Shown here piece by piece: positions 1 through 64,000 of a stretch of DNA of 64,000 bases. The stretch is taken from positions 248,001-312,000 of IMG/VR virus record IMGVR_UViG_3300023257_000007; one strand, written 5' to 3'. A program made the position numbers and the translations under genes. Under the pieces are notes generated by a model. It had not been told where the DNA came from, did not search any database, and saw only the letters and a program-made list of their open reading frames with translations. Within the stretch, counting starts at the first letter, position 1. Every line of letters begins with the position of its first letter.

Positions 1-305
1 AATTCTTTATTATAATCAGCATATTCTTCTAGGCTTTCAAATACTGTAAAAAATGTATTAGAAGAATAATTAAATGCGATGAGGGTTTTATTATAACCAA
101 TATAATATTCATTGTAACTATAATTGTTAATGCAATGTTCTAATATTTCTTTGTGATGGGCTTCATCTTCATTGGGTTCATCCCAGTATTTATTCAATTG
201 ACTTCTCCAATAATTAATAAGGCTTGTTACTTCTTCCGGAGTTTTGCAGTTAACTAGGACTTTATCTGATTGTATATTTTCTAAATATGTACTAAGGTAT
301 TTCAT
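1..305 (-). CDS. N-tagged hypothetical protein, partial (runs off window start)
   Basis: Manual translation from ATG at 305: MKYLSTYLENIQSDKVLVNCKTPEEV..., open to base 1; promoter-like motif at 313-322. Confidence 0.75.
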   Translation of the reverse strand, partial: MKYLSTYLENIQSDKVLVNCKTPEEVTSLINYWRSQLNKYWDEPNEDEAHHKEILEHCINNYSYNEYYIGYNKTLIAFNYSSNTFFTVFESLEEYADYNKE

Positions 306-312
306 ATGAAGA

Positions 313-322
313 TATATATTGA
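313..322 (-). promoter_or_regulatory. Putative late-promoter-like motif (TCAATATATA variant)
   Basis: Variant of recurrent TTAATATATA, 8 nt upstream of an N-tagged start. Confidence 0.45.
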
Positions 323-359
323 ATTTGTTTTTTCAAAATAAATTTTGTATTTTATATTT

Positions 360-641
360 ATGAAATTTTATTATTTAGAAGTAAAAGAAAAGGATTGGAA
401 TGAAGTTATAAACTATATAACTAAAGTTATTCCTATTTGGAATGAAAAGTTTGATATAAGTCTTCCTATTAAACATATTGGATTTTATATAGATCTAAAG
501 AATGAATTTGGTTTAAATAATGATAATTTATTATTGTTTCGTTATCATAAATTAAATTTTAAAACTTGTGATTATATAAAGTGTAAGGATATAGAAGAAT
601 TCTTATTTTCTTATGAATCAAGTAAGATGGGATTATTGTAA
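360..641 (+). CDS. Small hypothetical protein, C-tag A
   Basis: Ends ESSKMGLL; start moved to ATG 360 (MKFYYLEVKEKDW). Confidence 0.8.
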   Translation: MKFYYLEVKEKDWNEVINYITKVIPIWNEKFDISLPIKHIGFYIDLKNEFGLNNDNLLLFRYHKLNFKTCDYIKCKDIEEFLFSYESSKMGLL

Positions 642-662
642 CATTATTAAATAAAACAAAGA

Positions 663-986
663 ATGAACATAGCTATCGAGTTATATACTAAGAAAGAGTT
701 ATTTAAGGCATGGAAAAAGATGTTAGATTTAGGATATAATTTAGATGTTTGGCATAGAATTTACATGGAGAAGGATTATAATTGGATTGGATTTGATTAT
801 ATAAAAAAAAGGGGTGGTCTTTATATTTATTTTGATTTAGATGAATATATAATGACTGGTTGGGATGGTTTATATAATATACACATGATTAAATATATTC
901 CTGATGATATGGATTTTATTATCAATCATATTGATATTGATTCGATTGATTCGTGTATAGAGGGTATTAAATTAGGTTTATTATAG
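663..986 (+). CDS. Small hypothetical protein, C-tag A; paralog of 2079-2399
   Basis: Ends EGIKLGLL; shares IAIE..KLF..W..M.DLGY and RGG.Y..FDLD with 2079-2399. Confidence 0.85.
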   Translation: MNIAIELYTKKELFKAWKKMLDLGYNLDVWHRIYMEKDYNWIGFDYIKKRGGLYIYFDLDEYIMTGWDGLYNIHMIKYIPDDMDFIINHIDIDSIDSCIEGIKLGLL

Positions 987-1035
987 ATTTGAAATTATGA
1001 GATTTTATAGGATCTACTAAAATGGGATTAATGTA

Positions 1036-1335
1036 ATGAATGAACTTGTATATATTAGTGTAAATAATAAGGAACAATATGATAGAGTTATACGTATTGC
1101 TGAAAATAATGGTTTTAAAACAAGAGGTAATTCCTCTTCTTTACCTGTTAATATTTATCTTTGTATTAAGGATGCTGTTGAAGGATCTTGGTTAAAGGAT
1201 GTTATTTATTTTAGTAGTAATGATTATGATCTATATAAAACTGTATTACCAGTTAGGATAAAATGTGATTATGAGGATTTTTCAGAAGAATATTTAAAGT
1301 TTATAACAGAATCAGATAAGATGGGATTATTATAA
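1036..1335 (+). CDS. Small hypothetical protein, C-tag A
   Basis: Ends ESDKMGLL. Confidence 0.85.
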   Translation: MNELVYISVNNKEQYDRVIRIAENNGFKTRGNSSSLPVNIYLCIKDAVEGSWLKDVIYFSSNDYDLYKTVLPVRIKCDYEDFSEEYLKFITESDKMGLL

Positions 1336-1337
1336 TT

Positions 1338-1749
1338 ATGAATGAATCGAATACAATATTGTGTGCTGCTTTTTGTGGTACTGGAAAAACTTATATTTGC
1401 AATCAGAATAAGAAGGCTATTAAAATTGAATATTGGAAGTATGAAAGAAGGACTAGAAAAAGAATATGTTAGTGATATAAAAAAGCAAATTGGAAAAGTA
1501 GATTATATTTTTTTAAGTACTGACATAGAAGGTTTGAAACTATTAAAAGGTTTTAATATTGTACTTGATTACCCTGAAAATAATTTGAGAAATGAATACC
1601 TTGATAGGTTTATTGATAGAGATAGTCCTTACGATTTTATAGGGACGTTTATGAAACATTGGAATATATGGATAGATGAACTTAAAGATCAAAATTATTG
1701 TAAACATATTATATTGAAAAATGGTGAGTACTTGCAAAATATTCTCTAA
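1338..1749 (+). pseudogene. P-loop NTPase/kinase-like gene split by a frameshift
   Basis: Frame from ATG 1338 reads MNESNTILCAAFCGTGKTYIC (Walker A-like); the plausible C-terminal half (KEYVSDIKK...DYIFLST...) is in the 1342 frame; shift near 1440-1450. Confidence 0.6.
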
Positions 1750-1779
1750 ATTAAAGACTATGTTTTAAATTAAATAACA

Positions 1780-2082
1780 ATGAATGATATAGATATAAAT
1801 GTAAATGAAGATAATTATATAGAATTTGTCAATTATTTATATAGTATTAATTATATAACTAAGAATGATAATGAAAGGTTAGTTAATTGGTATACTGATG
1901 TGAATGATTATTTTCAAAAAGAATATAACTCATATGAATATAGATTATTTTTTGATCGTAAAGAATGGGATATAATAGCTTGTTGTTGTGGCGGTTCTGA
2001 ATTTTTTAAAAAAGTAACTTTTATTAATAATTTAAAGGAATTAGAGGTTTATATGAATTGTTTAAAAATGGGGCTATTATGA
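1780..2082 (+). CDS. Small hypothetical protein, C-tag A
   Basis: Ends NCLKMGLL. Confidence 0.85.
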   Translation: MNDIDINVNEDNYIEFVNYLYSINYITKNDNERLVNWYTDVNDYFQKEYNSYEYRLFFDRKEWDIIACCCGGSEFFKKVTFINNLKELEVYMNCLKMGLL

Positions 2083-2399
2083 AAAGAATTGCAATAGAGA
2101 TATATTCCATAGAGAAATTATTTGAAATATGGGAAGAAATGGTTGATTTAGGTTACACTTTAAGTTCTTGGACTAATATATTTAAGAGAACAGAAATTGA
2201 TTGGCTTGGTTTTTTAAGTATTGAAAGAGGTGGTATTTATCTTTGTTTTGATTTAGATAAGTGTATAATGATTGGTTGGGGAAGTCTATATTATGATTCT
2301 GGAAAAAAGTTTATTATTAAAGATTTTGAATTAATTATAGATAGTAGTAAAGATGATATTAGATTTCATCTAAATTCAATTAAGATGGGGTTATTATAA
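2079..2399 (+). CDS. Small hypothetical protein, C-tag A
   Basis: ATGA overlap with upstream gene; ends NSIKMGLL; shares TTATAA 2394-2399 with the convergent gene. Confidence 0.85.
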   Translation: MKRIAIEIYSIEKLFEIWEEMVDLGYTLSSWTNIFKRTEIDWLGFLSIERGGIYLCFDLDKCIMIGWGSLYYDSGKKFIIKDFELIIDSSKDDIRFHLNSIKMGLL

Positions 2400-2747
2400 T
2401 AGTCCGAGTTTATTTCCTTGTATCAATATATCAAGATCCATTCCATATTCTTTTTTTAACCAATCATCACAACTTATAAAAGAATCTTTATAAAATGACA
2501 CATATTCTAATAGAAACTTCATTGAGCTCCAACACTTATCAAAGCGTTGACCATCATCTAATGTAAAAAATGTTTTATCTTTTGAAAAAGCAACCCAAAA
2601 ATTTTCTTTAAAATTTACTCTAGAATATTCTATATCATATTTTTCCTCAATTAATTTTATTATAAATTTTGTTTCTTTATGAGGTATATCAGTTATTACA
2701 ACAATATTATCCTCTTTATTTTCATTGTATGTATTAAGATATTTCAT
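2394..2747 (-). CDS. N-tagged, C-tag A hypothetical protein
   Basis: MKYLNTYNEN...QGNKLGLL. Confidence 0.85.
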   Translation of the reverse strand: MKYLNTYNENKEDNIVVITDIPHKETKFIIKLIEEKYDIEYSRVNFKENFWVAFSKDKTFFTLDDGQRFDKCWSSMKFLLEYVSFYKDSFISCDDWLKKEYGMDLDILIQGNKLGLL

Positions 2748-2770
2748 TTTCAAATGTTTCAAATCTTATT

Positions 2771-2802
2771 TTGTTTTATATATTAATTTGTTTTTTTAGA
2801 AT
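2771..2802. repeat. 32-bp intergenic repeat containing the TTAATATATA motif (copy 1; copy 2 at 5132-5163)
   Basis: ttgttttatatattaatttgtttttttagaat identical at both sites. Confidence 0.85.
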
Positions 2803-3322
2803 ATTTTTTTTATCTTTCAATATGAAAATAAATATAATGTATGCGGGGATGGCGGATGATATTATGCTTCCAATGTTACAAGTTCCAACTTTCATAATAA
2901 TCCAAGTTTATTTGCTTCTATTTTTATTTGATGGAGCCTTTGCTAGAAATGGTTGGGAAAGTCAAAAAGAAGATATAAGACAAACGTTATTGTCTGGTAA
3001 TAATGAGAATTCATGGCACAGGGAGGTATATTTAAAATATGAATCAGACACTCCAACTTTTTCATTAGAAGAAAAATGTGTTATATTATCTGATATAGAT
3101 AAAGATGAATGTTGGAAATTGACATTTGATTATAATGGAAAGCGCAGAGAACTAATTTATTATCATCATCAAAACTTTTATGATGTGTGGCCTGATAATA
3201 TAAAGGATATTAATCATTTATTTAGTATTGGTGCTACTTTTGAATATTTAACAGAACCTAAATTAAAAGAAATGTTGAAGACAAGATGTACTGGTTATTT
3301 ATATGATCAAGTGACACCATAA
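2771..3322 (+). CDS. Hypothetical protein with a hydrophobic N-terminal segment; true start probably downstream
   Basis: ORF track, 183 aa; no recognised domain. Confidence 0.55.
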   Translation: MFYILICFFRIFFLSFNMKINIMYAGMADDIMLPMLQVPTFIIIQVYLLLFLFDGAFARNGWESQKEDIRQTLLSGNNENSWHREVYLKYESDTPTFSLEEKCVILSDIDKDECWKLTFDYNGKRRELIYYHHQNFYDVWPDNIKDINHLFSIGATFEYLTEPKLKEMLKTRCTGYLYDQVTP

Positions 3323-3376
3323 GAAACAGAAATAATTCAAATGAATAGAAGGATTTATATTAATAAAATAGATATA

Positions 3377-3856
3377 TTAATATAATCCCATTTTATTTGC
3401 ATTATAAAGGTCTGGATTTTCTTTCCAAAACCATTCCCAATATTCTTCTAAATTATTATAAGGTAATTGGTTATTATAACAATTTAAATATTCTAATCTT
3501 TTAGATAATTCAGGTAATTCAGTTAATTGGTTACCATCACAATCTAAATATTTTAACTCTTTTGGTAATTCAGGCAATTTAGTTAATTTATTATTATAAC
3601 AATATAATATTTCTAACCCTTTTGGTAGTTCAGGTAATTCAATTAATTTGTTGTTGTCACAATATAACATTTCTAATCCTTTTGGTAATTCAGGTAATTC
3701 AGTTAATTGATTATTATAACACATTAATTTTTCTAACCCTTTAGGTAATTCAGGTAATTCAGTTAAATTTAAATTAACTAAATTTAATATTTTACCATCA
3801 TCACTTAGATGATCTTTTATTAATTGGTTTTCTGAATATGTTTTTAAATATTTCAT
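3377..3856 (-). CDS. Short-LRR protein (5 repeats), N-tag and C-tag A
   Basis: 20-aa LTELPELPKGLxxLxCxxNx repeats; MKYLKTYSEN...NANKMGLY. Confidence 0.95.
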   Translation of the reverse strand: MKYLKTYSENQLIKDHLSDDGKILNLVNLNLTELPELPKGLEKLMCYNNQLTELPELPKGLEMLYCDNNKLIELPELPKGLEILYCYNNKLTKLPELPKELKYLDCDGNQLTELPELSKRLEYLNCYNNQLPYNNLEEYWEWFWKENPDLYNANKMGLY

Positions 3857-3882
3857 CTATTTTATAATTTTATTGACTTACA
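3851..3882. repeat. 32-bp gene-junction direct repeat (copy 1; copy 2 at 4256-4287)
   Basis: tttcatctattttataattttattgacttaca identical at both ends of gene 3878-4261. Confidence 0.85.
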
Positions 3883-4261
3883 TAAGTCCTAATTTACCTG
3901 ATTCAAATACATATGGGTTATTATGAAAGAATATTTTCATAATAAATAATATTAGTTCATAATCTTTTATTATTTGGTGTCCATCATTTTTATTTGAAGA
4001 TTCTTTTATCCAATTTGGATCTGATACAACTGCAACTTGCTGTTCAACTTTTTGTAATATTATTTGAAATAGATTTCCTTCTCGTTTTAACACAATAGTT
4101 GTGTATACTCCGTTATAATCTATTTCAAGGAATCCATTTCTAATATAAATTTTAAATTTGGTATCTTTAAACATATCTTTTATTGTATCAACAAAGAAAT
4201 CTTGATTGTTATCATTAACTGAAATCTCATTTATCATTTGATATGTCTTTAAATGTTTCAT
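3878..4261 (-). CDS. N-tagged, C-tag A hypothetical protein
   Basis: MKHLKTYQMINEISVN...ESGKLGLM. Confidence 0.85.
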   Translation of the reverse strand: MKHLKTYQMINEISVNDNNQDFFVDTIKDMFKDTKFKIYIRNGFLEIDYNGVYTTIVLKREGNLFQIILQKVEQQVAVVSDPNWIKESSNKNDGHQIIKDYELILFIMKIFFHNNPYVFESGKLGLM

Positions 4262-4287
4262 CTATTTTATAATTTTATTGACTTACA
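4256..4287. repeat. 32-bp gene-junction direct repeat (copy 2)
   Basis: Identical to 3851-3882. Confidence 0.85.
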
Positions 4288-4651
4288 AGACACCAAGATT
4301 TTTTGTCCCATTATACATATTTATCATATTTTGTAATTCATTCATAAATTCATCTTTAGTTATTAATATATCTGAGTGTTTATAATAACCGCAAGGACCA
4401 TAAATACGATTTAATTTATAATGAATTGTTCTACTTTCATGTTGTACACAGCAACTATACACCATTTTTCTTTTATCTTCCTCTTTTTCAAGTATATCAC
4501 AACATAATTCTATTTTTGTTCTATGTACATCAAATTTAAAATCATTTATAAGTTTATCATATATTTCAATTGCTTCTTTTGCGTTATTAAATTCAACTGA
4601 TATAAACTTATCTTCATCTATATTTTCATTATATGTTTTAAGGTATTTCAT
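4283..4651 (-). CDS. N-tagged, C-tag A hypothetical protein
   Basis: MKYLKTYNEN...NGTKNLGVL. Confidence 0.85.
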   Translation of the reverse strand: MKYLKTYNENIDEDKFISVEFNNAKEAIEIYDKLINDFKFDVHRTKIELCCDILEKEEDKRKMVYSCCVQHESRTIHYKLNRIYGPCGYYKHSDILITKDEFMNELQNMINMYNGTKNLGVL

Positions 4652-5121
4652 TATAATAATCCTAGTTTATTTGCTTCTAAATCTGCTTTAAGGTCTTCAC
4701 TTTTAAGGTATTCTAATATTTGTGAAAGTTTTTTATAATTTTTTAAATTTTTACTAACCCTTGTTAAAAGACTAAATTTATCTCTATTATTATCTTCAAT
4801 AAGATAAGCAATAACATCAACAATTTTACTAGTATTAATATCAACTGAATCTAATACTTCTAGATGTGTATAATTACCTAATTTAATATTTTCTGGTATT
4901 TTTATAAATACTTGTTCATATTTATCACCATGTAAAATATATTGATATTTATTATATATTTTAGCACATTCCTTTTTAATATCTGATATTAGTTTATTAA
5001 AATTATCAAAAATTGTTTTATCATTTATTTGTTTATAAAGCAATTCTTTTTGTTTATAAAATGATTCTTGTTGTTTATAGTTTTCTTCTATGTTTTCGTT
5101 ATATGTTTCACTTATGATCAT
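4651..5121 (-). CDS. Hypothetical protein, degenerate N-tag, C-tag A
   Basis: MIISETYNEN...EANKLGLL; TAATG overlap with next gene. Confidence 0.85.
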   Translation of the reverse strand: MIISETYNENIEENYKQQESFYKQKELLYKQINDKTIFDNFNKLISDIKKECAKIYNKYQYILHGDKYEQVFIKIPENIKLGNYTHLEVLDSVDINTSKIVDVIAYLIEDNNRDKFSLLTRVSKNLKNYKKLSQILEYLKSEDLKADLEANKLGLL

Positions 5122-5131
5122 ATTGTTTTGT

Positions 5132-5163
5132 TTGTTTTATATATTAATTTGTTTTTTTAGAAT
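5132..5163. repeat. 32-bp intergenic repeat with TTAATATATA motif (copy 2)
   Basis: Identical to 2771-2802. Confidence 0.85.
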
Positions 5164-5241
5164 TTTTTTCTTATATTACAATAATTATTAAAAATTATGA
5201 AAGAATTAATTTGGTTAAATATATGTTATAAAGGTCTTATG

Positions 5242-5484
5242 TCAAAAGAAATGTATTTCTACATATTCATCTATGATGATTGGATGATATCTTTTAATAT
5301 CTCTCACTATATCATCTACAATTTCTTTTAGTTTTATTATATCTGTATTTGGTGGAACAAATAAGTAAATTTCTGAATCATCTTTACACAAACCCTTTTT
5401 ATTCAAATAATATGGTGTATTTTTAAATATATCATCAATAATATATTTAAATTTAAATGATTCATACTTTTTTATATATTTCAT
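5242..5484 (-). CDS. N-tagged hypothetical protein
   Basis: MKYIKKYESF...; no C-tag. Confidence 0.7.
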   Translation of the reverse strand: MKYIKKYESFKFKYIIDDIFKNTPYYLNKKGLCKDDSEIYLFVPPNTDIIKLKEIVDDIVRDIKRYHPIIIDEYVEIHFF

Positions 5485-5494
5485 AATTATTAGA

Positions 5495-5905
5495 TTATAA
5501 AAGACCCATTTGACCTGTTATTAATAATCTTTTTACTTTTTTTAATGGTACTAAATAATTTTCCCAGTTTTCTGGACTATCATCTATACCATCTGTTATA
5601 TCTTTATCTTCCCAAACAGATATTGGTATTTTATTATCCTTTGTAAAGATAGTGTTTGCACCATTTTGATCAAATCGTATAATCTCTTCATCAAATAAAT
5701 TAAAAATTGTTCGACTTGTTTTTATATTATCATCAATATATGAATTATAGTCAGTAATTAAATGTTTTGCATATTGATTAAACCATTTACAACCATTCTT
5801 TATAGCTAAATTAGTATAAGTAAAATATTCATCAATATTACTTACTTCAAACACAAATAATACATTTGGTATTGTACTTTCATTATATGTTTTTAAATAT
5901 TTCAT
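5495..5905 (-). CDS. N-tagged, C-tag A hypothetical protein
   Basis: MKYLKTYNES...ITGQMGLL. Confidence 0.85.
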   Translation of the reverse strand: MKYLKTYNESTIPNVLFVFEVSNIDEYFTYTNLAIKNGCKWFNQYAKHLITDYNSYIDDNIKTSRTIFNLFDEEIIRFDQNGANTIFTKDNKIPISVWEDKDITDGIDDSPENWENYLVPLKKVKRLLITGQMGLL

Positions 5906-6085
5906 TATAGTTTATATATTTATTTTTTTATTTAAGAAAATTTTAACTATTTTTTTAATACCTTTAGTTTTAACTATTGGTATATTTTTAAAATAATTAT
6001 TTAATTCATCAACCATTTTAATTCTTAACTTAGATGTAATGGTCATAGACTTAGCAAATTGATTATATGTGTCTAATTTATTCAT

Positions 6086-6511
6086 TTATAATAGTCCTAA
6101 TTTAGTAGATTCAAATTTTGATTCTATATTTTCACTATGAATATATTCTATTATTTTTTCTTCAAATTCCGTAGAGCAACTCTCAATATAATAATTAGTG
6201 TCATTCACAGATTGAAGAAATATTCTATAAGAAGTCGAAATTTCTTCATCATACTTTATGATATATAATGATAAATCATCATCTGGATCTACAATTGTTC
6301 TTCTATCTATATTAGTAGGTTTATCTATAAAATCTGAACCAGATACATTTACTTTAACATCTGTTCTACTATTCAAATATTCATTAGGTTTACCATATTT
6401 ATTTATTAAATACTCACATCTATATAATAATTCTTCATCATCTTTATAAATATGATGAACAGTACCATTATCATATATTAATGATTCATTATAAGTTTTT
6501 AAATATTTCAC
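6086..6511 (-). CDS. N-tagged, C-tag A hypothetical protein (GTG start)
   Basis: GTG-KYLKTYNES...ESTKLGLL. Confidence 0.85.
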   Translation of the reverse strand: MKYLKTYNESLIYDNGTVHHIYKDDEELLYRCEYLINKYGKPNEYLNSRTDVKVNVSGSDFIDKPTNIDRRTIVDPDDDLSLYIIKYDEEISTSYRIFLQSVNDTNYYIESCSTEFEEKIIEYIHSENIESKFESTKLGLL

Positions 6512-6516
6512 AAGAC

Positions 6517-6526
6517 TATATATTAA
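6517..6526 (-). promoter_or_regulatory. TTAATATATA promoter-like motif
   Basis: Exact motif just upstream of N-tagged gene 6086-6511. Confidence 0.55.
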
Positions 6527-6630
6527 TTTTTTATTTTAAGATAAATTTTCTATATTAAAATTATGGATATTAAAGAAAACCTTAAAAATTATTATGAAAT
6601 TAGATAAATATTTCTTAATTAAAGATAAAT

Positions 6631-6954
6631 ATGATTAAAATTAATATTACGGGAATTAATTGTAATGAATTTGAAAAGTTACAAAAAATATTCTTTGATC
6701 AAAATATACCTTGGTATTATAGTGGTTATAAATTACAATCATCCGATGATTGTAATTATTATCATAACATTTATATTGTTTCAAAAATCGTTGTCATGAG
6801 AAATGATAACCATGAAAAAGAAGAATATTATATGACCTTTAAAAAAGATAATATAATCTCAAAAGACCAAGATTTAATTGAATATAAATATGATGAAATG
6901 GATGAGAATACATTAAAAAGTTATTTTAACGGTTTACAACTAGGATTATTATGA
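6631..6954 (+). CDS. Small hypothetical protein, C-tag A
   Basis: Ends NGLQLGLL. Confidence 0.85.
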   Translation: MIKINITGINCNEFEKLQKIFFDQNIPWYYSGYKLQSSDDCNYYHNIYIVSKIVVMRNDNHEKEEYYMTFKKDNIISKDQDLIEYKYDEMDENTLKSYFNGLQLGLL

Positions 6955-7269
6955 TATCAATAAATATAGAAAATATAAGTCTAAATGACTTCAAGAAATT
7001 GCAAATACATATGATTGATCAAAATATTCCTTGGATTGATGGTGATTGGGAAGTTTGGGTAGATGGATATTGGTCATTTATAATTAATCATAAAAAAAAA
7101 TATCTTACTAATTGATCAATATACATCAACTGGTAAACCAGTTGATGGTTACCTTAGATATAATATGCAATTGTGTAATGTTTCATCTCCAATCGTTTTA
7201 AGTGTTGAAGAAATGCTTGATTTAAATATATACGAATATTTGGAGGCGAAAAAGTTTAATTTATTATAA
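6951..7269 (+). pseudogene. Frameshifted paralog of 6631-6954, C-tag A
   Basis: MISINIENISLNDFKKLQIHMIDQNIPW... shifts at a poly-A run near 7092-7100; the other frame ends EYLEAKKFNLL. Confidence 0.7.
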
Positions 7270-7514
7270 TAGATCCATCTTATTCGATGCAATATACTCT
7301 TGTAAATTAAAATCTTTAGTTATATCAGAACCATTTAACTTACCTAACAAAATACCAATTTCAGTATATTTTTCAATAATTTGATTATAAAACCAAGTAG
7401 TCCAATGATTTCCAATATAAGTTTTATCATCTATATTAATTAGTAAATTAATTTCTTTCCAAAACCATTCCTTATATCACTAATACTTTCATCATATGTC
7501 TTTAAGTATTTCAT
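7264..7514 (-). pseudogene. Frameshifted N-tagged, C-tag A gene
   Basis: MKYLKTYDESISDI, then a frame change to KEWFWKEINLL...QEYIASNKMDLL. Confidence 0.7.
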
Positions 7515-7537
7515 GAATAATTTAAAAACTTTTGTTT

Positions 7538-7547
7538 TATATATTAA
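7538..7547 (-). promoter_or_regulatory. TTAATATATA promoter-like motif
   Basis: Exact motif 24 nt upstream of the N-tagged start at 7514. Confidence 0.55.
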
Positions 7548-7731
7548 AATTTAGATTTGAATATCAATACCCAGAATTTATATTCCAACCTCTACAATAT
7601 CATAAAATTAATTTTTATACCAAGAAATATTCCTTATATTTAAGTATTGGAATTTCGAAAAAATTGAAGAATTTTTATTTTTTGAACAAATTCCGTATAT
7701 TATAAATGATGAAATACATAAACTACTAAAT

Positions 7732-8622: not shown

Positions 8623-8912
8623 TGACAACATATATAACAGATATACCATCAGAATATATATTATATCTTGATAAAATAATCAGTGAATATTATAATATGA
8701 AATCTATAATTAGACCTAATAAAAGAATCATAAAATATGATTATTATTTTATAAGTATCAATAAATATAATGATAATTGTCTGTGTTATTCAGGTATGTG
8801 TTATTTACATGAACTCATAGGACCAACCAGTGAAACTATTAATTATGTTGATTGGTTAGAAAAACATAATTTAACATACAAATTAGAATCAACCAAATTA
8901 GGATTATTATGA
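8622..8912 (+). CDS. Small hypothetical protein, C-tag A; tandem paralog of 8909-9205
   Basis: MTTYITDIPSEYILYLDKIISEYYNM...ESTKLGLL. Confidence 0.85.
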   Translation: MTTYITDIPSEYILYLDKIISEYYNMKSIIRPNKRIIKYDYYFISINKYNDNCLCYSGMCYLHELIGPTSETINYVDWLEKHNLTYKLESTKLGLL

Positions 8913-9205: not shown

Positions 9206-9212
9206 TAATAAA

Positions 9213-9222
9213 TTAATATATA
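9213..9222 (+). promoter_or_regulatory. TTAATATATA promoter-like motif
   Basis: Exact motif 7 nt upstream of ATG 9230. Confidence 0.5.
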
Positions 9223-9229
9223 AATTAGA

Positions 9230-57211: not shown

Positions 57212-58408
57212 TTAATTTGAACCAATAGTTATTAATTCTGGATGAACAGCACACCCTCTATCCCATTTAAATTCTGGGACTACTTTTTTTAATATATTAT
57301 ATGATGCGTTTAAATCAGCATTTATTAATATGTTTTCTTTACTTTTAAACATACCCCTTGAAACCCTTTTACCACAATATTCTTTATGTTTTTTTAATTC
57401 TTCACCATCAATAAAAGAACATTTACTTGTGAAACTTTCTTCATTTAATTTAACATTCAAACCTTCTTTTAATGCTTTATATTCAATCATTTGAATTAAT
57501 TTATAAAAAGGTATTTGAACAAAATTTTGATTATTCTTCTTACCCATATTTACATTTTGTTTCCAACTTTTATTATAACCAATAATTATTGTATTTAAAT
57601 CATTTTTTAAACAAAAATCAACCAAATATTTAGATGCATTATGTAAGTAATTATTTATTTTATTATTTCTTTTTTCAGTTAATAAATATAACCTTTTACT
57701 TATAAAAGTTTTCTTTGGTAATTTTGATTGTAATTTAGACAACTTTTTATTATAATATTGATTAATTGATTTTAATGGTCTACCGTTAATGATTATAGGT
57801 TTTACAACCTTTTCATTTGAAGTTATAGCCATTAAATTATTTACACCTAAATCAACACTACAATATTTACTATTGTCTAACTTTAAAGGTTTTTCATCAT
57901 ATTTATATACTATATTTATTTTATATTTTTTTGTTTTAAGTGGTTTTACCTGAACCTCAATTATTTTTTTACTTTTATTTTGAAATGGTAATTTAATACC
58001 TGTTTTATATAATTCTATATAACCTTCCTTTTCAAGATTTTTAGTTTTTACAGCATTATCCACCAAAATGGCTGTAAATTTACTATTTTTAGGTAAATAT
58101 TTAGGTAAATTTGGTTTACCAGTAAATCTATTTGGATTCTTTTTCCATTCTTTCATAGCGTTAAAAAAACTTTTCCAATTTGCATTAAGTATTCTTAGTG
58201 TTGGTCTAGCAATTCTAGATAATAAATCTTTATATTCTACGTGATCTTTCATAATGGTATACATATCATATACTGTAATATAATTACCATGATTAATAAA
58301 TTCCTGTCTGATAATGTAGTTAGCTTTATTGTAAAGATTTTTGGTTTTAACACAAATATCGTTTAAATTATTGTTATTTTTAATTATATGTGATTCAATT
58401 AAATACAA
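57212..58408 (-). CDS. tnpB: TnpB-family nuclease (IS1341-like clade), TTG start; no tnpA nearby
   Basis: KNLYNKANY, SVDLGVNN, IIIGYNKSWKQ, NEESFTSKCS, INADLNASYNI. Confidence 0.9.
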   Translation of the reverse strand: MYLIESHIIKNNNNLNDICVKTKNLYNKANYIIRQEFINHGNYITVYDMYTIMKDHVEYKDLLSRIARPTLRILNANWKSFFNAMKEWKKNPNRFTGKPNLPKYLPKNSKFTAILVDNAVKTKNLEKEGYIELYKTGIKLPFQNKSKKIIEVQVKPLKTKKYKINIVYKYDEKPLKLDNSKYCSVDLGVNNLMAITSNEKVVKPIIINGRPLKSINQYYNKKLSKLQSKLPKKTFISKRLYLLTEKRNNKINNYLHNASKYLVDFCLKNDLNTIIIGYNKSWKQNVNMGKKNNQNFVQIPFYKLIQMIEYKALKEGLNVKLNEESFTSKCSFIDGEELKKHKEYCGKRVSRGMFKSKENILINADLNASYNILKKVVPEFKWDRGCAVHPELITIGSN

Positions 58409-58779: not shown

Positions 58780-59364
58780 TTAATTTAATTTTATTATATT
58801 ATTTTTATTTTTCTTTTTTTCTTTTCCAATATAAATTGTGGTATCTTCACCCGCAATTTCATTAATAACTTTTGTTTCTGAAATTATTAATTTAACACCA
58901 TCTGACTTTTCTGGATTCTTATATTCTTTTGTAATTATTTCATCAGGTTTTGTCTCAACTTCAGGATTAGTATAACTTATACCACCATTGTCTCCAATTC
59001 CAAAATGGTCAAAAGTTTCATAATGATTCCATGTTGTATTTTTAGTAAATATACTATCAAACTCATGTATATTTACTTCAGTATATTCTTGTATGTGATT
59101 TTCACCATCATACTTATAATTTACAATAACAATCTCTTTTGTCTTATTATATTCAATTACTGGATATATTTGAGATGTTTCTGTTTTCCAATCAATCAAA
59201 AGACCTACAACTGATGAAGCAAAAATAACACAAAGAAAAGCAAACATAAATCCAGCTCCAACCGAAAAATCATTGTAATAATTTTTCTTCTTCCACGTTG
59301 TAAAAATTGAACATATTAATAATATAAAGGCAATACTACTTGCAACAATCAACAGTGTACTCAT
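58780..59364 (-). CDS. Two-TM membrane protein, tandem paralog 1
   Basis: Two N-terminal hydrophobic helices; IYPVIEYN; ends NNIIKLN. Confidence 0.8.
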   Translation of the reverse strand: MSTLLIVASSIAFILLICSIFTTWKKKNYYNDFSVGAGFMFAFLCVIFASSVVGLLIDWKTETSQIYPVIEYNKTKEIVIVNYKYDGENHIQEYTEVNIHEFDSIFTKNTTWNHYETFDHFGIGDNGGISYTNPEVETKPDEIITKEYKNPEKSDGVKLIISETKVINEIAGEDTTIYIGKEKKKNKNNIIKLN

Positions 59365-59366
59365 AA

Positions 59367-59898
59367 TTAATTTAATTTTATAATGTTAAACTTCTTTTTC
59401 TCTTTTTTTGTTTCTTCCTTCTTTTTCTCTTTAGGTTTTTCCTTAGGTTCTTCTTTTTTATATGATATCTCTCTGATTTTTGTTGAATCAACTATTTCAG
59501 GTGTCTCAAATTTTAAATTATGTTCTATAATTTTACCAAAATGATTTATTTCTTCTTTCACATAAAATACAGTATTCTCATTAAAATTAGTTTCAAACTC
59601 TTTATTTGTATATTTCTTTGCAAATGTTGTTGTCCAATTACTTAATTTATAATCATAAGTTGCTTTAACAACAAGAGTTTCTTCATTGTAAATAATATCA
59701 GGATAAGCATCAATATCATTTCTTTTCCATCCAGTAAAATAACCAATTAAAAATGTTGCAATAATAACAACTATAAACCACACACAAACAAGTACCAGTA
59801 CTCCACTCATGATAACCACCATCATCCCATGGTGTAAAAATCATAAATATTAAAAGTATTAAGGCTATACTTCCACCAATCCATATTAATAAACTCAT
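59367..59898 (-). pseudogene. Two-TM membrane protein, tandem paralog 2, split by a frameshift near 59800
   Basis: N-terminus MSLLIWIGGSIALILL (59898 frame) joins GVLVLVCVWF...FNIIKLN (59367 frame). Confidence 0.65.
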
Positions 59899-59900
59899 AT

Positions 59901-60401
59901 CTAATTTATTTTTATAATATTTTTTTTATCTGTAATTTTTACAGTATCTTTCTCTTCTTTTATATTGTTAATTGAACGCAATAAATCTTTTTCTTCTTTT
60001 ATATTTGAATAATTTTTATATTCGTAATCACTTTTCTGTTGAAATGTAACTTTTATATCCTTTTTATGTCCAAATAAATTTTTATCAAAAACAATATACC
60101 ATTGTATATCATTTGTTAATTTATCATATTTAATATTAACACCATCTTCATAATCTTTACCATCATATTGATAAATGGCAGTTACTTGATAATTCGTTTT
60201 ATTGTGTCTTATTTTAGGATATATCTGGTGTGTTTCATTGCTATAACTTATAGAAGCGTAAAACCAAAATATAATTGAACAAATTAAAGTACAAATCAAT
60301 GCACCATACCAATGTTCAGTTGCTTTACCAATCCATCCAAATATTAAACCTAATATACAAGCCGAACATATACATATCATAACTATTACACTTACACTCA
60401 T
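59901..60401 (-). CDS. Two-TM membrane protein, tandem paralog 3
   Basis: IYPKIRHN; ends KNIIKIN. Confidence 0.8.
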   Translation of the reverse strand: MSVSVIVMICICSACILGLIFGWIGKATEHWYGALICTLICSIIFWFYASISYSNETHQIYPKIRHNKTNYQVTAIYQYDGKDYEDGVNIKYDKLTNDIQWYIVFDKNLFGHKKDIKVTFQQKSDYEYKNYSNIKEEKDLLRSINNIKEEKDTVKITDKKNIIKIN

Positions 60402-60402
60402 A

Positions 60403-60888
60403 TTACAATTCTATTAAATTACTTTTTATTTTTTCTTTTATTTCAGGGTCTTTTTTCTTTTCTTCTGTTTTTTCTTCTGTTTTCTTAGAATAATCAACGC
60501 TTTTAACTATATTTTTAGGTTTTTTAAATACTATTGTAGATTTATTAAGTTTATAACCATAAAAATTCATATTATATTCAACATACCACTCTAAACCAGG
60601 TTTAAGATCATTGAAATTAACATTAATCTTTTCTGTTTTTTCTTCACCTTTATATTCATAAATAGCATAAACAATTTGATTATTTTCATCATAATCTATT
60701 CTAGGATAGATTCTTTCAGATACTTTATCAAACACATTACCCATAAATATAAATATGATAACAAATGAAATAACACCAATAATAAGACTCGGTACTCCAA
60801 GACCGACCAAATCTTTTTTTATCGAATAAATAAATCCCAATAAACATAATGGGAATATAAATAAATTTATTAAAGCAATTATACTCAT
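60403..60888 (-). CDS. Two-TM membrane protein, tandem paralog 4
   Basis: IYPRIDYD; ends SNLIEL. Confidence 0.8.
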   Translation of the reverse strand: MSIIALINLFIFPLCLLGFIYSIKKDLVGLGVPSLIIGVISFVIIFIFMGNVFDKVSERIYPRIDYDENNQIVYAIYEYKGEEKTEKINVNFNDLKPGLEWYVEYNMNFYGYKLNKSTIVFKKPKNIVKSVDYSKKTEEKTEEKKKDPEIKEKIKSNLIEL

Positions 60889-60889
60889 T

Positions 60890-61540
60890 TTAGTTAAATA
60901 TTTTATTAATTAATTTTTTGGCAATATCATCTTTGCCATTACATTTCACATAATTTTTCTCTGTATCAATAATATAAGCAATATGTTCTTTTGCTATTTG
61001 CATTTCTAATTTATCATTAGCAATAACAAAATCACTATTGTTTCTAGTCATTGATTCATAAGCAATGTCAATCAAATTATTCAAAGATTGACCAACTTCA
61101 AACTTAAAACTAACAAGTTTAATTTCTGGATTCCACTTCTTAATATAAGAAATAACTTTGGGATTCTTTTTAATTCTTGATCTTAAAGAATCAATAAAGG
61201 CTTGTGGACTATCGCTTTTTAATTTTTCATTTAAAGATTCAAAACCAAAATCACTAATAGCCATTGAATGAATCACCACATCCATTTTTGGTATTAATTT
61301 TTCCATTTCTTCCATAACTTCTTCAACAGAGTCAGCATATATTATATTGCCTTTGTAGAATATTTCAGGAATTACTGAATATTTAGAGCATAAATAATAA
61401 CAATCTTGAATTTTGACTGATTTACTCATGAGCAAATTGTCAGCAATCTTTGCTCCTAATTTACCTGTACTAATATTAGTTAATACTCTTACATCATCTA
61501 AATATTCTCTAGTTCCACCCGCTGTAATTAAAATCTTCAT
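60890..61540 (-). CDS. coaB: Phosphopantothenate--cysteine ligase (CoaB-like, stand-alone)
   Basis: ILITAGGTREYLDDVRVLTNISTGKLG, SMAISDF, LVSFKFE, VIAND. Confidence 0.85.
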   Translation of the reverse strand: MKILITAGGTREYLDDVRVLTNISTGKLGAKIADNLLMSKSVKIQDCYYLCSKYSVIPEIFYKGNIIYADSVEEVMEEMEKLIPKMDVVIHSMAISDFGFESLNEKLKSDSPQAFIDSLRSRIKKNPKVISYIKKWNPEIKLVSFKFEVGQSLNNLIDIAYESMTRNNSDFVIANDKLEMQIAKEHIAYIIDTEKNYVKCNGKDDIAKKLINKIFN

Positions 61541-61551: not shown

Positions 61552-61752
61552 TTATATTTTGTCATAAATTATTATATCTACACTATTAACATAACTACTT
61601 TCTTTCTTTGAAGCAAACACTTTAATGTCTATCAATCTTCTTTCTTTACACCATATATCTAACCATTCATTGACTTGATTTTTTATATCCCATCTTCCAA
61701 TAGATAGTAAAGTGTCTATTCTTTTAGTTTCTTCTATACTATTTAAACTCAT
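61552..61752 (-). CDS. Small hypothetical protein, tandem paralog
   Basis: MSLN..EET...INEW...IDIK...IIIYD.I family. Confidence 0.75.
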   Translation of the reverse strand: MSLNSIEETKRIDTLLSIGRWDIKNQVNEWLDIWCKERRLIDIKVFASKKESSYVNSVDIIIYDKI

Positions 61753-61943
61753 ATTATATCATATATTATTAGTATATCTTTATCCCATTCACTACCTTTA
61801 GATAATGTAATTTTTATATCAATAATTTTATATTTTTCTTTATTCTCATTGATCCACTCATTAATTCTTGTTTGAACTTGAGTTTGTCTAATATCATATA
61901 AAAACTTAACCTGTAATGTTTCTTCTGTTTTATTTAAACTCAT
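61749..61943 (-). CDS. Small hypothetical protein, tandem paralog
   Basis: Same family; 41-bp junction identity 61741-61781 vs 61932-61972. Confidence 0.75.
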   Translation of the reverse strand: MSLNKTEETLQVKFLYDIRQTQVQTRINEWINENKEKYKIIDIKITLSKGSEWDKDILIIYDII

Positions 61944-62143
61944 ATTATATCATATATTATTAGTATATCTTTTCTAAACTCATATTCTTCATCAGAAGAC
62001 GATGCAATTATATTTATATCTATAATTTTATAATTAGATTTATTTTTCTCAATCCAATTGTTTATTTTCTTTGATACCTTTTTTTGTTTAATATCATATA
62101 AATAATGGACTCTCTTTGTTTCGTCTATTTTATTTAGGTTCAT
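61940..62143 (-). CDS. Small hypothetical protein, tandem paralog
   Basis: Same family. Confidence 0.75.
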   Translation of the reverse strand: MNLNKIDETKRVHYLYDIKQKKVSKKINNWIEKNKSNYKIIDINIIASSSDEEYEFRKDILIIYDII

Positions 62144-62246
62144 AAATTATCAGTATTGATTTGTAAGAACTAGAATAACTACCACCAGTAGAATTTGATA
62201 TTATTTTAATATTTATTAATTCAATATCCTCATTTTCCTTTAACCA
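62130..62246 (-). pseudogene. 5'-truncated fourth paralog of the 61552-62143 family
   Basis: WLKENEDIELINIKIISNSTGGSYSSSYKSILIIYEPK; no start; overlaps the coaC 3' end. Confidence 0.6.
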
Positions 62247-62700
62247 TTAAACCTTTAACAGGTGATATAATATGTGTATTATCCATAGATGCGACCAATC
62301 CTTCATTGAATTGATATTGAACACTTTCATACATTTTAGTATTCATTGCAGGACATATAATTCTAGGAGTTTCTTTTGGAAGAGCGATAAATGTACTAGT
62401 CACGAAATCATCAGCGATTCCATGTGCAAATTTAGCCATAATATTAGCAGTTGCTGGTACACAGATAAAAGCATCACAATTTTGTGCTTCCACAATATGT
62501 GATACTATATTTGGATCATCATTCGTAATATAATTACCTGATATAGTTCCTATAACTGTGGGAGTTATAAAATTTAGAGCATTTTTAGTTGTCATAACTC
62601 TAACAATATAACCAGAGGCTTTTAAACCTGAAATAACATCAGCAACTTTATAGGCTGATATACCACCACTAATGGCTATTAATATTGTTTTTGTGTTCAT
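62230..62700 (-). CDS. coaC: HFCD flavoprotein / phosphopantothenoylcysteine decarboxylase (CoaC-like), C-terminally truncated
   Basis: ILIAISGGISAYK, VPATANIMAKFAHGIADD, PAMNTKMY; ends PVKGLMVKGK without the LACG-type Cys motif. Confidence 0.8.
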   Translation of the reverse strand: MNTKTILIAISGGISAYKVADVISGLKASGYIVRVMTTKNALNFITPTVIGTISGNYITNDDPNIVSHIVEAQNCDAFICVPATANIMAKFAHGIADDFVTSTFIALPKETPRIICPAMNTKMYESVQYQFNEGLVASMDNTHIISPVKGLMVKGK

Positions 62701-62863
62701 TTATAAGTTCTTTATGCGATTTAATTTCAAAATAATCATCGAGAAATTTAATCAATTCTTTATATTATATTTTTCATCACCACTACTACTATATACTGTG
62801 AAAGATTTAACCGTAGATAAATTAAGTCTTTTGTTCTTTACTTTTATCCAAAGATCTTGTTTA

Positions 62864-63118
62864 TTATTCATATTCTTCTATTGCCTCCTCAACTGTTCTT
62901 ACATCAAAATATTTATTTAGGAAATCAACGAATTTCTTTCTATCATCTTCATTTCCAAACCAACAATCATGACATTCTTTTTCATAATCATAGAGTTCAA
63001 TACAAAATGGCCCACTACCATATTTTTTAAAGTATCTAATATTCTTTAAATTTATAGTATGCCCATTTTCCCCCTTCTCATTTAATTTAATCCAATAATC
63101 TTGTTCATTTAACGACAT
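62864..63118 (-). CDS. Hypothetical protein
   Basis: ORF track. Confidence 0.65.
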   Translation of the reverse strand: MSLNEQDYWIKLNEKGENGHTINLKNIRYFKKYGSGPFCIELYDYEKECHDCWFGNEDDRKKFVDFLNKYFDVRTVEEAIEEYE

Positions 63119-63121
63119 ATC

Positions 63122-63367
63122 TTACATTTTAGGGTAAATAAATTCTTTTCTAACTTTAGTCTCTATAGTTACATAATTATCAGACAATTCAACAATTCTA
63201 CCATCCATTCCATCTGAAAGTTGATTAAATTTAACATCATCACCTTTTCTCATACATTTTCTATATTTTCGAGCAATTCTCTCTTTTTTAACTGATTTTA
63301 TAATTCTATAAAATATATAACCTATAATACAAATTATACCTATTGCAAATAATATTTTTATTGTCAT
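63122..63367 (-). CDS. Small single-TM protein (YajC-like topology)
   Basis: N-terminal TM followed by RKGDDVKF...GRIVELSDNYVTIE. Confidence 0.5.
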   Translation of the reverse strand: MTIKILFAIGIICIIGYIFYRIIKSVKKERIARKYRKCMRKGDDVKFNQLSDGMDGRIVELSDNYVTIETKVRKEFIYPKM

Positions 63368-63522
63368 AATAATCCTAAATCTTTTCCATTAAGATAATCA
63401 GCTAATCTTTCTTTTAATATATCGGCCAATTCATCTTCTGTTAATATTTCTCTTAATTTACTCATGATAATATCGTAATTTAATGGTTCATCAATACTAC
63501 AAAAATCTTCATCATTACTCAT
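63364..63522 (-). CDS. 52-aa hypothetical protein, C-tag A (not in the ORF track)
   Basis: MSNDEDF...ADYLNGKDLGLL. Confidence 0.7.
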   Translation of the reverse strand: MSNDEDFCSIDEPLNYDIIMSKLREILTEDELADILKERLADYLNGKDLGLL

Positions 63523-63605
63523 TTATTCATTTATTTTTTAATCAACTGTAATATACAAAAAAATTTTAAATAAAAAAACGTGTTATAAAAATTAAGAAGT
63601 TTATT

Positions 63606-63615
63606 TTAATATATA
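63606..63615 (+). promoter_or_regulatory. TTAATATATA promoter-like motif
   Basis: Exact motif upstream of 63639 and 63679. Confidence 0.55.
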
Positions 63616-63638
63616 TTTCAAAAGATCTTAATAGTTTA

Positions 63639-63674
63639 ATGAAAAATTACGAACAATTTATTAAAGAAATATAA
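63639..63674 (+). other. 11-aa ORF consisting only of an N-tag
   Basis: MKNYEQFIKEI-stop. Confidence 0.5.
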
Positions 63675-63678
63675 AATA

Positions 63679-64000
63679 ATGAAACATTTAAAAACATATG
63701 AAAATATAAAAGATTTTGACAAAAATAAAGAAGATCTAATAAAAATGACAGTTAAATATCGAAATGAAATTGCTGATAAAATTTATAGTCTTGAAAAATA
63801 TACCAAATCTAGAATAATAGAAATACCATTTAATTCTCATCCTAAATATGATTTAATAAGAATTGAATGGTGTGATGTTGAAAAGATGACAAGTTTTGAT
63901 ATTGATATTGATATTTGTGCTGTTGGTGAAGGTTTAAACCACCTTGTTTTTTGGTTAAACCAAGGAAAAATTACTAAATCTCGTAATTTTAATAAGAAAG
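63679..64000 (+). CDS. N-tagged hypothetical protein, partial (runs off window end)
   Basis: MKHLKTYENIKDF...DKIYSLEKY..IIEIP, similar to the 25219/26013 family. Confidence 0.75.
   Translation, partial: MKHLKTYENIKDFDKNKEDLIKMTVKYRNEIADKIYSLEKYTKSRIIEIPFNSHPKYDLIRIEWCDVEKMTSFDIDIDICAVGEGLNHLVFWLNQGKITKSRNFNKK

Follow-up and report, generated by a model that had tools for sequence, protein, structure and literature searches.

Why should about a fifth of the open reading frames (ORFs) in one stretch of phage DNA open with nearly the same handful of residues? The question is raised by a 64-kb window (the whole stretch of DNA analysed here, with a G+C content of 24%) of IMG/VR contig 3300023257_000007, which is 348,222 bp long, so that the phage is at least 348 kb in size. 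Many ORFs of this window start with MKYLKTYxE or a variant of it (the N-tag), and the analysis revealed that they are nested in a larger set of ORFs ending with a second conserved peptide (the C-tag). The answer that we favour, tentatively and at somewhat less than an even chance, is that the N-tag is a detachable N-terminal leader related to the capsid-targeting sequence (CTS) of phage T4, and that the proteins carrying it are packaged in the phage head.

The scan for the N-tag covered every ATG, GTG and TTG start in the window. A loose pattern (M-[KM]-[YHF..]-[LI]-x-[TSRK]-[YF]) matched 28 starts, 27 of them genuine, and 19 of these also fitted a strict pattern (M-K-[YHF]-[LI]-K-[TS]-Y); the remaining match, a GTG start at 11510 followed by an ORF of 11 codons, was attributed to chance and dropped. 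Searched for in six frames, the heptapeptide occurred 23 times: 19 times at MK (or GTG-start VK) starts, twice after 'MM' starts, and twice by chance in antisense. It is confined to the starts of ORFs and is essentially never internal. At the DNA level, the tag pattern ATGAARYAYHTWAARWCWTAY gave 17 matches, against 0.00 expected from 100 dinucleotide shuffles. The N-tag is genuine and far beyond chance. An earlier reading made from the letters of this DNA (the sequence-only reading) had counted roughly 35 such ORFs, a figure that is reached once degenerate starts (MIISETYNEN at 5121, MVKLQTYKLF at 22402, MNKLDTYNQF at 6085, MKYLKYYESS at 25062) and T4-like short forms are included (about nine looser variants). 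The three variants it listed are all present: MKTYNEY at 40932 lies on the minus strand, MKTFKSFLE at 47333(-) has a TTG start codon, and MKNYEQFIKE at 63639 is an 11-codon mini-ORF. Five N-tag ORFs (7514, 16837, 17516, 21511, 25062) are short or frameshifted, and such broken copies, associated with A-runs, point to birth-and-death turnover. When the 30-nt tag DNA was compared with cultured phages only noise was obtained, along with multi-copy matches in uncultured phages of 462-642 kb.

The C-tag ([LI]-E-[AS]-x-K-[ML]-[GN]-L-[LIY]) ends 53 of the 138 ORFs of the window (approximately 40%). Almost all of these ORFs lie within positions 360-36938, and many abut the next gene via TAATG or ATGA. 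Cross-tabulation of the two tags over the 138 ORFs gave 19 with both, four with the N-tag only, 35 with the C-tag only and 80 with neither. Two of the 'N-only' ORFs are cut by the edges of the window (1-305, whose counterpart in locus L134 ends with KMGLL, and the ORF starting at 63679). Among the complete N-tagged ORFs, 20 of 22 also carry the C-tag and two carry the N-tag alone (Fisher p = 1e-7). The N-tagged ORFs thus fall within the set of C-tagged ones. The sequence-only reading had taken the two tags to be independent, and had seen in them two separate address labels on a combinatorial set of cargo; by these counts the former view is wrong, and the nesting speaks against the latter as well, contradicting it.

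All lineages compared have the same N-tag, whereas the C-tag varies with the phage lineage and not with the protein family, even within the leucine-rich repeat (LRR) family (L073, L035 and L037 were compared). It reads K[ML]GL[LIY] in the phage of the window, but a contig of 330 kb has K[FY]N[IL] in its place, and L035 has KFGL. A lineage-varying C-tag combined with a constant N-tag is the pattern expected of address peptides having one lineage-specific and one conserved reader. The C-tag is a second, lineage-varying peptide label on a larger protein set, which includes the N-tagged one, and as a C-terminal label it may be new; a protein of the C-tag family found no match among 50,697 phage records. 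Its likeness to the bacterial sliding-clamp-binding motif (QL[SD]LF type), which we take to require Gln at motif position 1 and a hydrophobic pentapeptide at the C-terminus, was considered and rejected, since position -5 is Q in only 4 of the 53 C-tags and K in 44. In five of the 53, Asn replaces Gly. At 80 head loci, too few tagged genes lay near head modules for covariation between scaffold C-termini and the type of C-tag to be followed.

The N-tag heads proteins of at least three unrelated sequence families, comprising LRR_4 proteins, an alpha/beta family ('family 1') and others; in related contigs it is also found on ankyrin-repeat proteins and on a methyltransferase-domain protein (L021). 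It forms a short leader at the very start of proteins that are not otherwise related, and an extension relative to untagged paralogues: in family 1 it adds 10-14 residues before the first shared strand. An LRR paralogue at 49957-50364(-) starts with MNIKNHLS and has no N-tag. In another strain, the matching position just upstream of the helicase gene (L003:4383-4751) is tagged (MKYLKTYNENQLIKDNLS), so that, depending on the strain, this locus holds an untagged LRR gene, an N-tagged one, or a 72-residue fragment (L002:9780-9998). Gain and loss of the tag at this locus are recent. Profile searches of the tagged and CTS-like proteins against Pfam, PHROGs and PDB gave no function beyond LRR, ankyrin and one methyltransferase, and the ESM Atlas returned only 'hypothetical protein' viral clusters for two tagged proteins.

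AlphaFold2 (AF2) gave a good model of the LRR protein starting at 28986, with an overall predicted local distance difference test score (pLDDT) of 94; the body scored 94-99, the C-tail 93 and the first ten residues 66, and the N-tag was placed in a helix continuous with the LRR cap. The model of the family 1 protein was poor (pLDDT 66). In it, residues 1-19 are without secondary structure (the first ten score 52), whereas the helix before the C-terminal tail is predicted with confidence.

The sequence-only reading had proposed to look elsewhere in the genome for T4-like head genes and a gp21-like prohead protease, and both were found. They lie in locus L163, the first 15 kb of contig 3300022868_000009 (344,634 bp), which was retrieved via an alignment of Mahaphage-type capsid proteins. 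This contig and 3300022868_000015 (88,478 bp) are sister contigs of that of the window, and the former is identical to positions 1-11159 of the window (100% identity over 11,159 nt). L163 encodes (i) a Portal_T4 protein (L163:3925-5532; E value 3.8e-67), (ii) a gp21-like protease-scaffold fusion of 811 residues (L163:7428-9863; phrog_207 head maturation protease, E value 1.3e-29), and (iii) a Gp23 capsid protein (L163:10001-11764; E value 6.4e-27), i.e. a gp20 portal, a gp21-family protease with a scaffolding core, and a gp23 capsid protein. The N-domain of the fusion (protease domain, L163:7428-8117) aligned with T4 gp21 at 94.4% probability (hhalign, E value 9e-8), T4 gp21 (5JBL) being its best PDB match, and its catalytic His (GEFDHPD) and Ser (FVSSRAAG) are invariant in 20 relatives. 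Genes carrying both tags begin 1.8 kb downstream of the capsid gene.

Three contigs, of 0.2-1 Mb, encode an identical capsid protein. Between the capsid protein of L163 and the L048 type the identity is 68%; the L048 type in turn shows 49-58% identity with LR756501-4 and 27-28% with Lak; the capsid type groups with those of the 634-735 kb Lac Pavin phages, the Lak phages and the Tenacibaculum phages. Five contigs out of 2.9 million contain both the N-tag and a Mahaphage-type capsid gene. Judged by such similarities, the genome is assigned to the T4 superfamily, within the Mahaphage/Lak capsid clade. Within the window, the AAA protein at 7732-8622 corresponds to phrog_1250, common to more than 1300 T4-like records, the nearest relatives of the helicase (48314-49954) are helicases of T4-like cyanophages, and those of a 654-residue ORF are found in Aeromonas T4-like phages, S-CAM7 and Lak phages. 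A giant-virus origin was rejected, because the tag-DNA matches in metagenome-assembled genomes of giant viruses lie away from the ends of ORFs and are due to chance in DNA rich in A and T. Two DUF7487 genes (L163:5578-7320(-) and L163:11890-13542(+)) bracket the protease and capsid genes of L163, with similar insertions in L048 and L035. From an impression of their N-termini they are apparently homing-endonuclease-like; no endonuclease domain was detected in the two L163 genes.

In the scaffold part of the 811-residue fusion, a unit of 14 residues with the core Y-S-E-Y-I-A-E is repeated in tandem about 11 times (about 11-14 if the core repeats are counted), and the repeat pattern (mostly Y-[SA]-E-Y-[IL]-A-E) was matched 9-14 times in every clade member checked. 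An S-L-N-E stretch ends the protease domain ('SLNESLG', with N and E invariant), and 'SLNEN' in the N-region of the capsid protein is at least 90% conserved; the conservation of this motif in both places makes L-N-E/ and I-A-E/ plausible cleavage sites (here and below, a slash marks the proposed cut). Fusions of the herpesvirus UL26 type and that of Tenacibaculum phage PTm1 ('prohead core scaffolding protein and protease') are built in the same way: the maturation protease forms the N-terminal part, a long scaffold of repeats comes after it, and the capsid gene adjoins. They differ in the repeat itself, which is LSEGIEKWI in PTm1 and a 14-residue unit with YSEYIAE in the present clade.

The internal proteins IPII and IPIII of T4 start with MKTYQEFIAEA, and the Y-x-E-[FY]-I-A-E pattern in this leader is that of the scaffold repeat. 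Y-x-E-[FY]-I-x-E is common to the repeat, the T4 CTS and the N-termini of several ORFs of the window, which suggests that the T4 CTS may imitate a segment of the scaffold, whereby its sequence would be explained. Among these ORFs is one of 196 residues (45434-46024(-)), whose start MKTKYDEFIKE/IEF fits the pattern. The mini-ORF at 63639-63674(+), MKNYEQFIKEI followed by a stop, agrees with the T4 sequence MKTYQEFIAE at M1, K2, Y4, F7, I8 and E10, and stops 4 nt before the next N-tag gene. A 302-residue ORF with a TTG start (46425-47333(-)) begins (M)KTFKSFLEG and is preceded by AATATATAA at 47351-47359. The best match of the window to a matrix of the scaffold repeat is ITYNNYIKE, at residues 13-21 of a 197-residue ORF (42004-42597(-)); applied to all window ORFs, the matrix gave a mild N-terminal enrichment (4-5 of the top 28).

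A bridge between these forms and the N-tag is provided by the ORF at 40996-41730(-) (244 residues), which starts with MKKINTYSEYILNE/TLKTH and has a 229-residue paralogue at 40243-40932(-) with the T4-like short start MKTYNEY. It belongs to a clade-wide family with the N-terminus ..[YW]S[EDQ][FY][ILVM]LNE; nearly all of its 152 homologues, with a length of about 240 residues, start with ..[YW]S[EDQ][FY][ILVM]LNETLKTHD. Versions such as MKLINTYSQFILNE show the N-tag pattern MK-x-[LI]-[KN]-T-Y-S-[EQ] over their first nine residues, and the N-tag variant MKYLKTYNRMINE/ISV retains I-N-E. A chain of similarity thus runs from the T4 CTS through the scaffold repeat and the leader of the 240-residue family to the N-tag.

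If the N-tag is a leader of the T4 type, it would let a protein co-assemble with the prohead scaffolding core of tandem YSEYIAE repeats, the gp21-family prohead protease would clip it after the conserved Glu (Y-[NS]-E/ or I-N-E/), and the mature protein would stay in the head and reach the host together with the DNA. All these steps are inferred, from binding to the core and cleavage to virion retention and ejection. In T4, residues 4 and 7 (aromatic) of the CTS direct targeting, and residues 8 (I/L) and 10 (Glu) direct processing; in T4, phiKZ and SPN3US alike, the gp21-family protease cleaves on the C-terminal side of Glu (PMC9026906). These determinants are fitted by minor forms of the window (MKNYEQFIKE, MKTKYDEFIKE with a shift of one residue, and MKYLKTY-NRMINE). 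Candidate substrate peptides for the protease are MKYLKTYNEN.., MKYLKTYNRMINEISV, MKKINTYSEYILNETL, the YSEYIAE repeat and the C-terminal ..LEAKRMGLL.

The sequence-only reading had seen in these genes a set of head-packaged, injected effectors, a proposal that the analysis supports in part. The T4-type head module, the YSEYIAE repeat and the bridge family speak for it; the loose fit to the T4 determinants and the acidic cargo do not, and several further observations weigh against a capsid-targeting role. The main tag matches the T4 register in part only (L4/Y7/N8 or S8/E9, versus Y4/F7/I8/E10 in T4); it scores poorly against the scaffold-repeat matrix, (T)Y[SN]E being all that it has in common with the repeat; and in 110 tags Glu is often, though not always, present at positions 8-9. 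Conservation in the bridge family runs past the proposed cut site (NETLKTHDID), so that its N-terminus may be part of the fold, and its homologues were found only in uncultured phages of 642-735 kb. The protease-scaffold fusion of the related cultured phage PTm1 has no YSEYIAE repeats, so that, apart from the I-A-E cleavage motif in common, part of the likeness to T4 may be coincidence. The tagged genes far outnumber any known CTS set, and nearly all N-tagged proteins also bear the C-tag, which has no T4 counterpart. Finally, the T4 internal proteins IPI-III are small, highly basic and DNA-associated, whereas the proteins encoded by ORFs with both tags are acidic, with a median isoelectric point of 5.2 (9.3-9.5 for T4 IPII/IPIII). 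A CTS can work without a basic charge on its cargo, since T4 also packages foreign proteins that are acidic.

Comparison with known systems places the set most naturally beside the internal proteins of T4. The capsid-targeting principle is known from that phage, and the genes of the window are best described as a variant of it. The T4 CTS proteins (IPI, IPII, IPIII, Alt) likewise begin with a leader, about 10 residues long and with a Glu near its end, and the phage, like the present genome, encodes a portal of the gp20 type, a protease of the gp21 family and a capsid protein of the gp23 type. T-even phages have diverse internal proteins, the CTS being their only common part (PMC3012670), and those of T4 resemble the tagged set in being otherwise unrelated, non-essential and fast-evolving. 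The window differs in that the main tag has its own sequence (MKYLKTY-x-E), that tens of genes are found per 64 kb instead of 3-4 per genome, and that the cargo is acidic, 90-240 residues long, often LRR, and provided with an obligatory second tag at the C-terminus. In T4 Alt, propeptides are removed from both the N- and the C-terminus; the window proteins, as read from their genes, carry tags at both ends. The motif Phi-Phi-E/[AGS] is frequent seven residues from the C-tagged ends, and one possibility is that the C-tag is a C-terminal propeptide clipped at this site, as in Alt.

Giant phages of the phiKZ type (phiKZ, SPN3US) contain many paralogous head-internal proteins, which a diverged homologue of gp21 cuts after Glu and which are ejected into the host (PMC9026906, PMC7411985). 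Those proteins are larger, have neither a shared N-terminal heptapeptide nor a C-terminal pentapeptide, belong with a different capsid clade and were found by mass spectrometry of virions, whereas the tagged proteins are known here from sequence alone and not from virions, a further point against the capsid-targeting role. In phage P1, cargo is directed to the capsid by the first 30 residues of DarB, and this signal is sufficient to load an effector for co-injection (PMC9024508); in the present clade a methyltransferase-domain protein is N-tagged. The Dar system differs in having a signal of about 30 residues and stepwise loading via DarA and Hdf, and shows no sequence similarity and no gene arrays. 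For the C-tag, an analogy is offered by encapsulins, where a short C-terminal peptide on diverse cargo proteins docks inside an HK97-fold shell. These cargo-loading peptides bear no sequence relation to the C-tag.

A possible, though doubtful, alternative to packaging is that the tags act within the infected cell, on a fast-evolving superfamily of small cytoplasmic host-takeover or anti-defence proteins whose end peptides serve for docking to a hub, as degrons, or in head-to-tail oligomerisation. The nesting described above suits it, since the inclusion of the N-tag set in a far larger set of C-tagged ORFs is better accounted for by a single superfamily with common ends than by nothing but a CTS of the T4 style. 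So does the lineage specificity of the C-tag, which would be expected if the peptide evolved together with a partner encoded in the genome or belonging to the host. The tagged proteins are moreover small and acidic, are encoded in birth-and-death arrays with fragments and frameshifts, and adjoin anti-defence genes such as Acb3, and the AF2 model gives an ordered C-tail and an N-tag helix continuous with the LRR cap. However, no hub, adaptor, PDZ/TPR domain or C-terminal protease was found in the window, and an intracellular role leaves unexplained both the likeness of the N-tag to the scaffold repeat, the T4 CTS and the leader of the 240-residue family, and its restriction to phages with the gp21/Gp23 head type.

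That the conservation serves the nucleic acid, with neutral peptides, is improbable. The junction K-M-G-L-L-stop/M-K-Y-L-K-T-Y would then be a portable gene-boundary cassette, providing translational coupling (TAATG/ATGA, with GGA as a Shine-Dalgarno-like element 8-10 nt upstream), an unstructured AT-only start for near-leaderless mRNAs, and microhomology for the shuffling of cassettes. Many C-tag stops do overlap the next ATG (TAATG or ATGA), the Gly codon is the only G-rich patch, the tag DNA is nearly pure A/T, and the tag has been gained and lost at orthologous positions between strains. A promoter-like motif, AATATATAR, occurs 38 times (20.6 expected; examples are at 2776-2784(-), 5912-5920(-), 15396-15404(+), 19965-19973(+), 32976-32984(+) and 47351-47359(-)) and lies 13-17 nt before 11 operon-first genes of the N-tag type, so near the ATG that their mRNAs would be nearly leaderless. 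However, the codons vary beneath fixed residues. Across 110 unique tags, drawn from related loci as well as the window, Leu4 was encoded by TTA 80 times, CTA 14, CTT 5 and TTG 1, Tyr3 by TAT 64 and TAC 21 times, and Lys5 by AAA 84 and AAG 26 times, the Leu codons of the tags extending over TTA, CTA, CTT and CTC; KLGLL is written in at least five codon combinations, e.g. AAATTAGGATTATTA, AAACTCGGACTATTA and AAACTTGGATTATTA. The synonymous share of tag changes in the window is 36%, compared with 17% expected under neutrality, and this excess indicates purifying selection on the tags. C-tags also occur where no gene follows, in some of them Asn stands for Gly, 35 C-tag genes lack the N-tag, and the C-tag is lineage-specific while the N-tag is not. 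The N-tag is under selection at the amino-acid level.

It is very improbable that the tags are functionless remnants inherited through duplication and end-to-end recombination among paralogues: many tagged genes are indeed recent paralogues (70-85% identity in the LRR set), but the same tags sit on unrelated folds, they are kept across contigs in which the proteins have diverged to 40-60% identity, and the synonymous excess signals purifying selection.

The AATATATAR motif also lies 27-30 nt before the capsid and protease genes (L163, upstream of 10001 and 7428). As a 'late' marker it was rejected: the motif precedes an exonuclease gene too, and late-specific expression is therefore not established.

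The N-tagged ORFs themselves are distributed as follows. The family 1 members are at 2394-2747(-) (MKYLNTYNEN, C-tag KLGLL, 117 residues), 4283-4651(-) (MKYLKTYNEN, NLGVL), 5495-5905(-) (MKYLKTYNES, QMGLL) and 26985-27329(+) (MKYLKTYNEN, KLNIL), the last of which was the one modelled with AF2. LRR proteins are encoded at 3377-3856(-) (MKYLKTYSEN, LRR_4 repeats, KMGLY, 159 residues), 15784-16230(+) (MKYLKTYNRMINE/ISV, KMGLY), 20440-20919(+) (N-tag, KMGLY), 20919-21479(+) (MKYLKTYNRMINE, LRR_4, KMGLY), 28687-28986(+) (MKHLKTYNEN, KMGLY), 28986-29405(+) (MKYLKTYSEN, KLGLY; the modelled LRR protein) and 33819-34538(+), where seven LRR_4 stretches lie between the N-tag and KMGLY in a protein of 239 residues.

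Other ORFs with both tags are located at 3878-4261(-) (MKHLKTYQMINE/ISV with I-N-E kept, KLGLM), 6086-6511(-) (GTG start, (V)KYLKTYNES, KLGLL, 141 residues), 15409-15783(+) (MKYLNRYNES, KMGLI), 16230-16835(+) (MKYLKTYESK, KMGLV; 201 residues, a weak relative of the ORFs at 40243-41730), 19979-20440(+) (MMYLKTYENF, KMGLY), 32990-33364(+) (MKYIKSYNEN, QLGLL), 33364-33822(+) (N-tag-like MKYLETYMHK, KMGIL) and 36558-36938(+) (MKFLKTYETY, KLGVL). The ORF at 5242-5484(-) (N-tag-like MKYIKKYESF, 80 residues) is one of the only two complete N-tag ORFs without a C-tag. The window start cuts the ORF at 1-305(-) (MKYLSTYLEN), which is complete in L134:6403-6747 (114 residues, ending with NKMGLL), and the window end cuts that at 63679-64000(+) (MKHLKTYENI).

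Decayed or broken copies comprise a 24-codon fragment at 7440-7514(-) (MKYLKTYDES), an N-tagged LRR fragment of 35 codons at 16837-16944(+) and a 60-codon fragment at 17334-17516(-) (MKYLKTYNRMINE). At 21511-22000(+), a start MMYLKTYENF (45 codons) is out of frame with the C-tagged ORF 21530-22000 (KFGLL) owing to a frameshift at an A-rich run. At 25062-25235(+), the N-tag-like start MKYLKYYESS is accompanied by a C-tag (SKKMGLL and stop, at about 25205-25228) that is 1 nt out of frame. Both of these frame breaks lie in A-rich runs, and the two loci are candidates for pseudogenes, homopolymer errors or slippage.

Several neighbouring genes of the window could also be named. A homologue of Acb3, the known inhibitor of the cyclic-oligonucleotide-based antiphage signalling system (CBASS), is encoded at 39401-40216(-) (Pfam E value 2e-37), directly downstream of the ORFs with CTS-like starts at 40243-41730. 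Two TnpB genes (11161-12327(+) and 57212-58408(-)) contain OrfB_IS605 and a Cas12f1-like TNB, and a third TnpB remnant was found at L039:13592-13816. Auxiliary genes occupy 9521-10348(+), 13657-14547(+), 53412-53807(-), 60890-61540(-) and 62230-62700(-); they encode a 275-residue fragment of the GluRS/GlnRS catalytic domain with the C-terminal end NNGLL, a PolX-like protein with thumb and HhH domains, the peptidyl-tRNA hydrolase PTH2, and CoaB (DFP) and CoaC (flavoprotein) as separate ORFs. Two small tandem families are also present, one of four membrane-anchored paralogues with the C-termini ..NIIKLN (58780-60888(-)), and one of three paralogues of 64-67 residues with the C-termini ..ILIIYDII (61552-62143(-)).

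About 20 kb past the right end of the window, L039:12642-13541 encodes a 299-residue T4 gp17-like terminase ATPase domain. The absence of the Walker A Lys (SRQMGISN) and of the catalytic Glu (LLYMDNYS) marks this ORF as a decayed terminase paralogue. It adjoins the TnpB remnant, and all assemblies break 1.8 kb further on. The 180-residue ORF at the break (L151:12126-12668 and L155) recurs letter for letter on a separate element, represented by contigs of at most 22.5 kb, which carries a YqaJ exonuclease, AAA_25, a BT4734-like primase and a Dam methylase. The assemblies are probably broken by this sequence common to the phage and the element.

Extended to the whole clade, the capsid-targeting reading would have Mahaphage-clade phages pre-load their capsids with dozens to hundreds of small effectors by a two-label address system, a proposal that we regard as unlikely in this full form. 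Its labels would be a clade-wide N-leader that mimics YSEYIAE and is clipped by the gp21-like protease, and a lineage-specific C-peptide that docks to a co-evolving partner, with LRR, ankyrin, methyltransferase and orphan folds as the cargo. Were it true, sequence alone would reveal which proteins uncultivated phages inject. Should the tags prove to be labels for packaging, huge phages would deliver, along with their DNA, a large and rapidly diversifying set of ready-made proteins, able to act before phage transcription, when restriction, CBASS and similar defences decide the outcome of infection. The tags would then supply a rule by which candidates for immediate-early anti-defence proteins of uncultivated phages could be recognised from sequence, as well as short natural peptides with which large capsids could be loaded with foreign cargo, and the concept of the T4 CTS would grow from 3-4 proteins to whole gene arrays.

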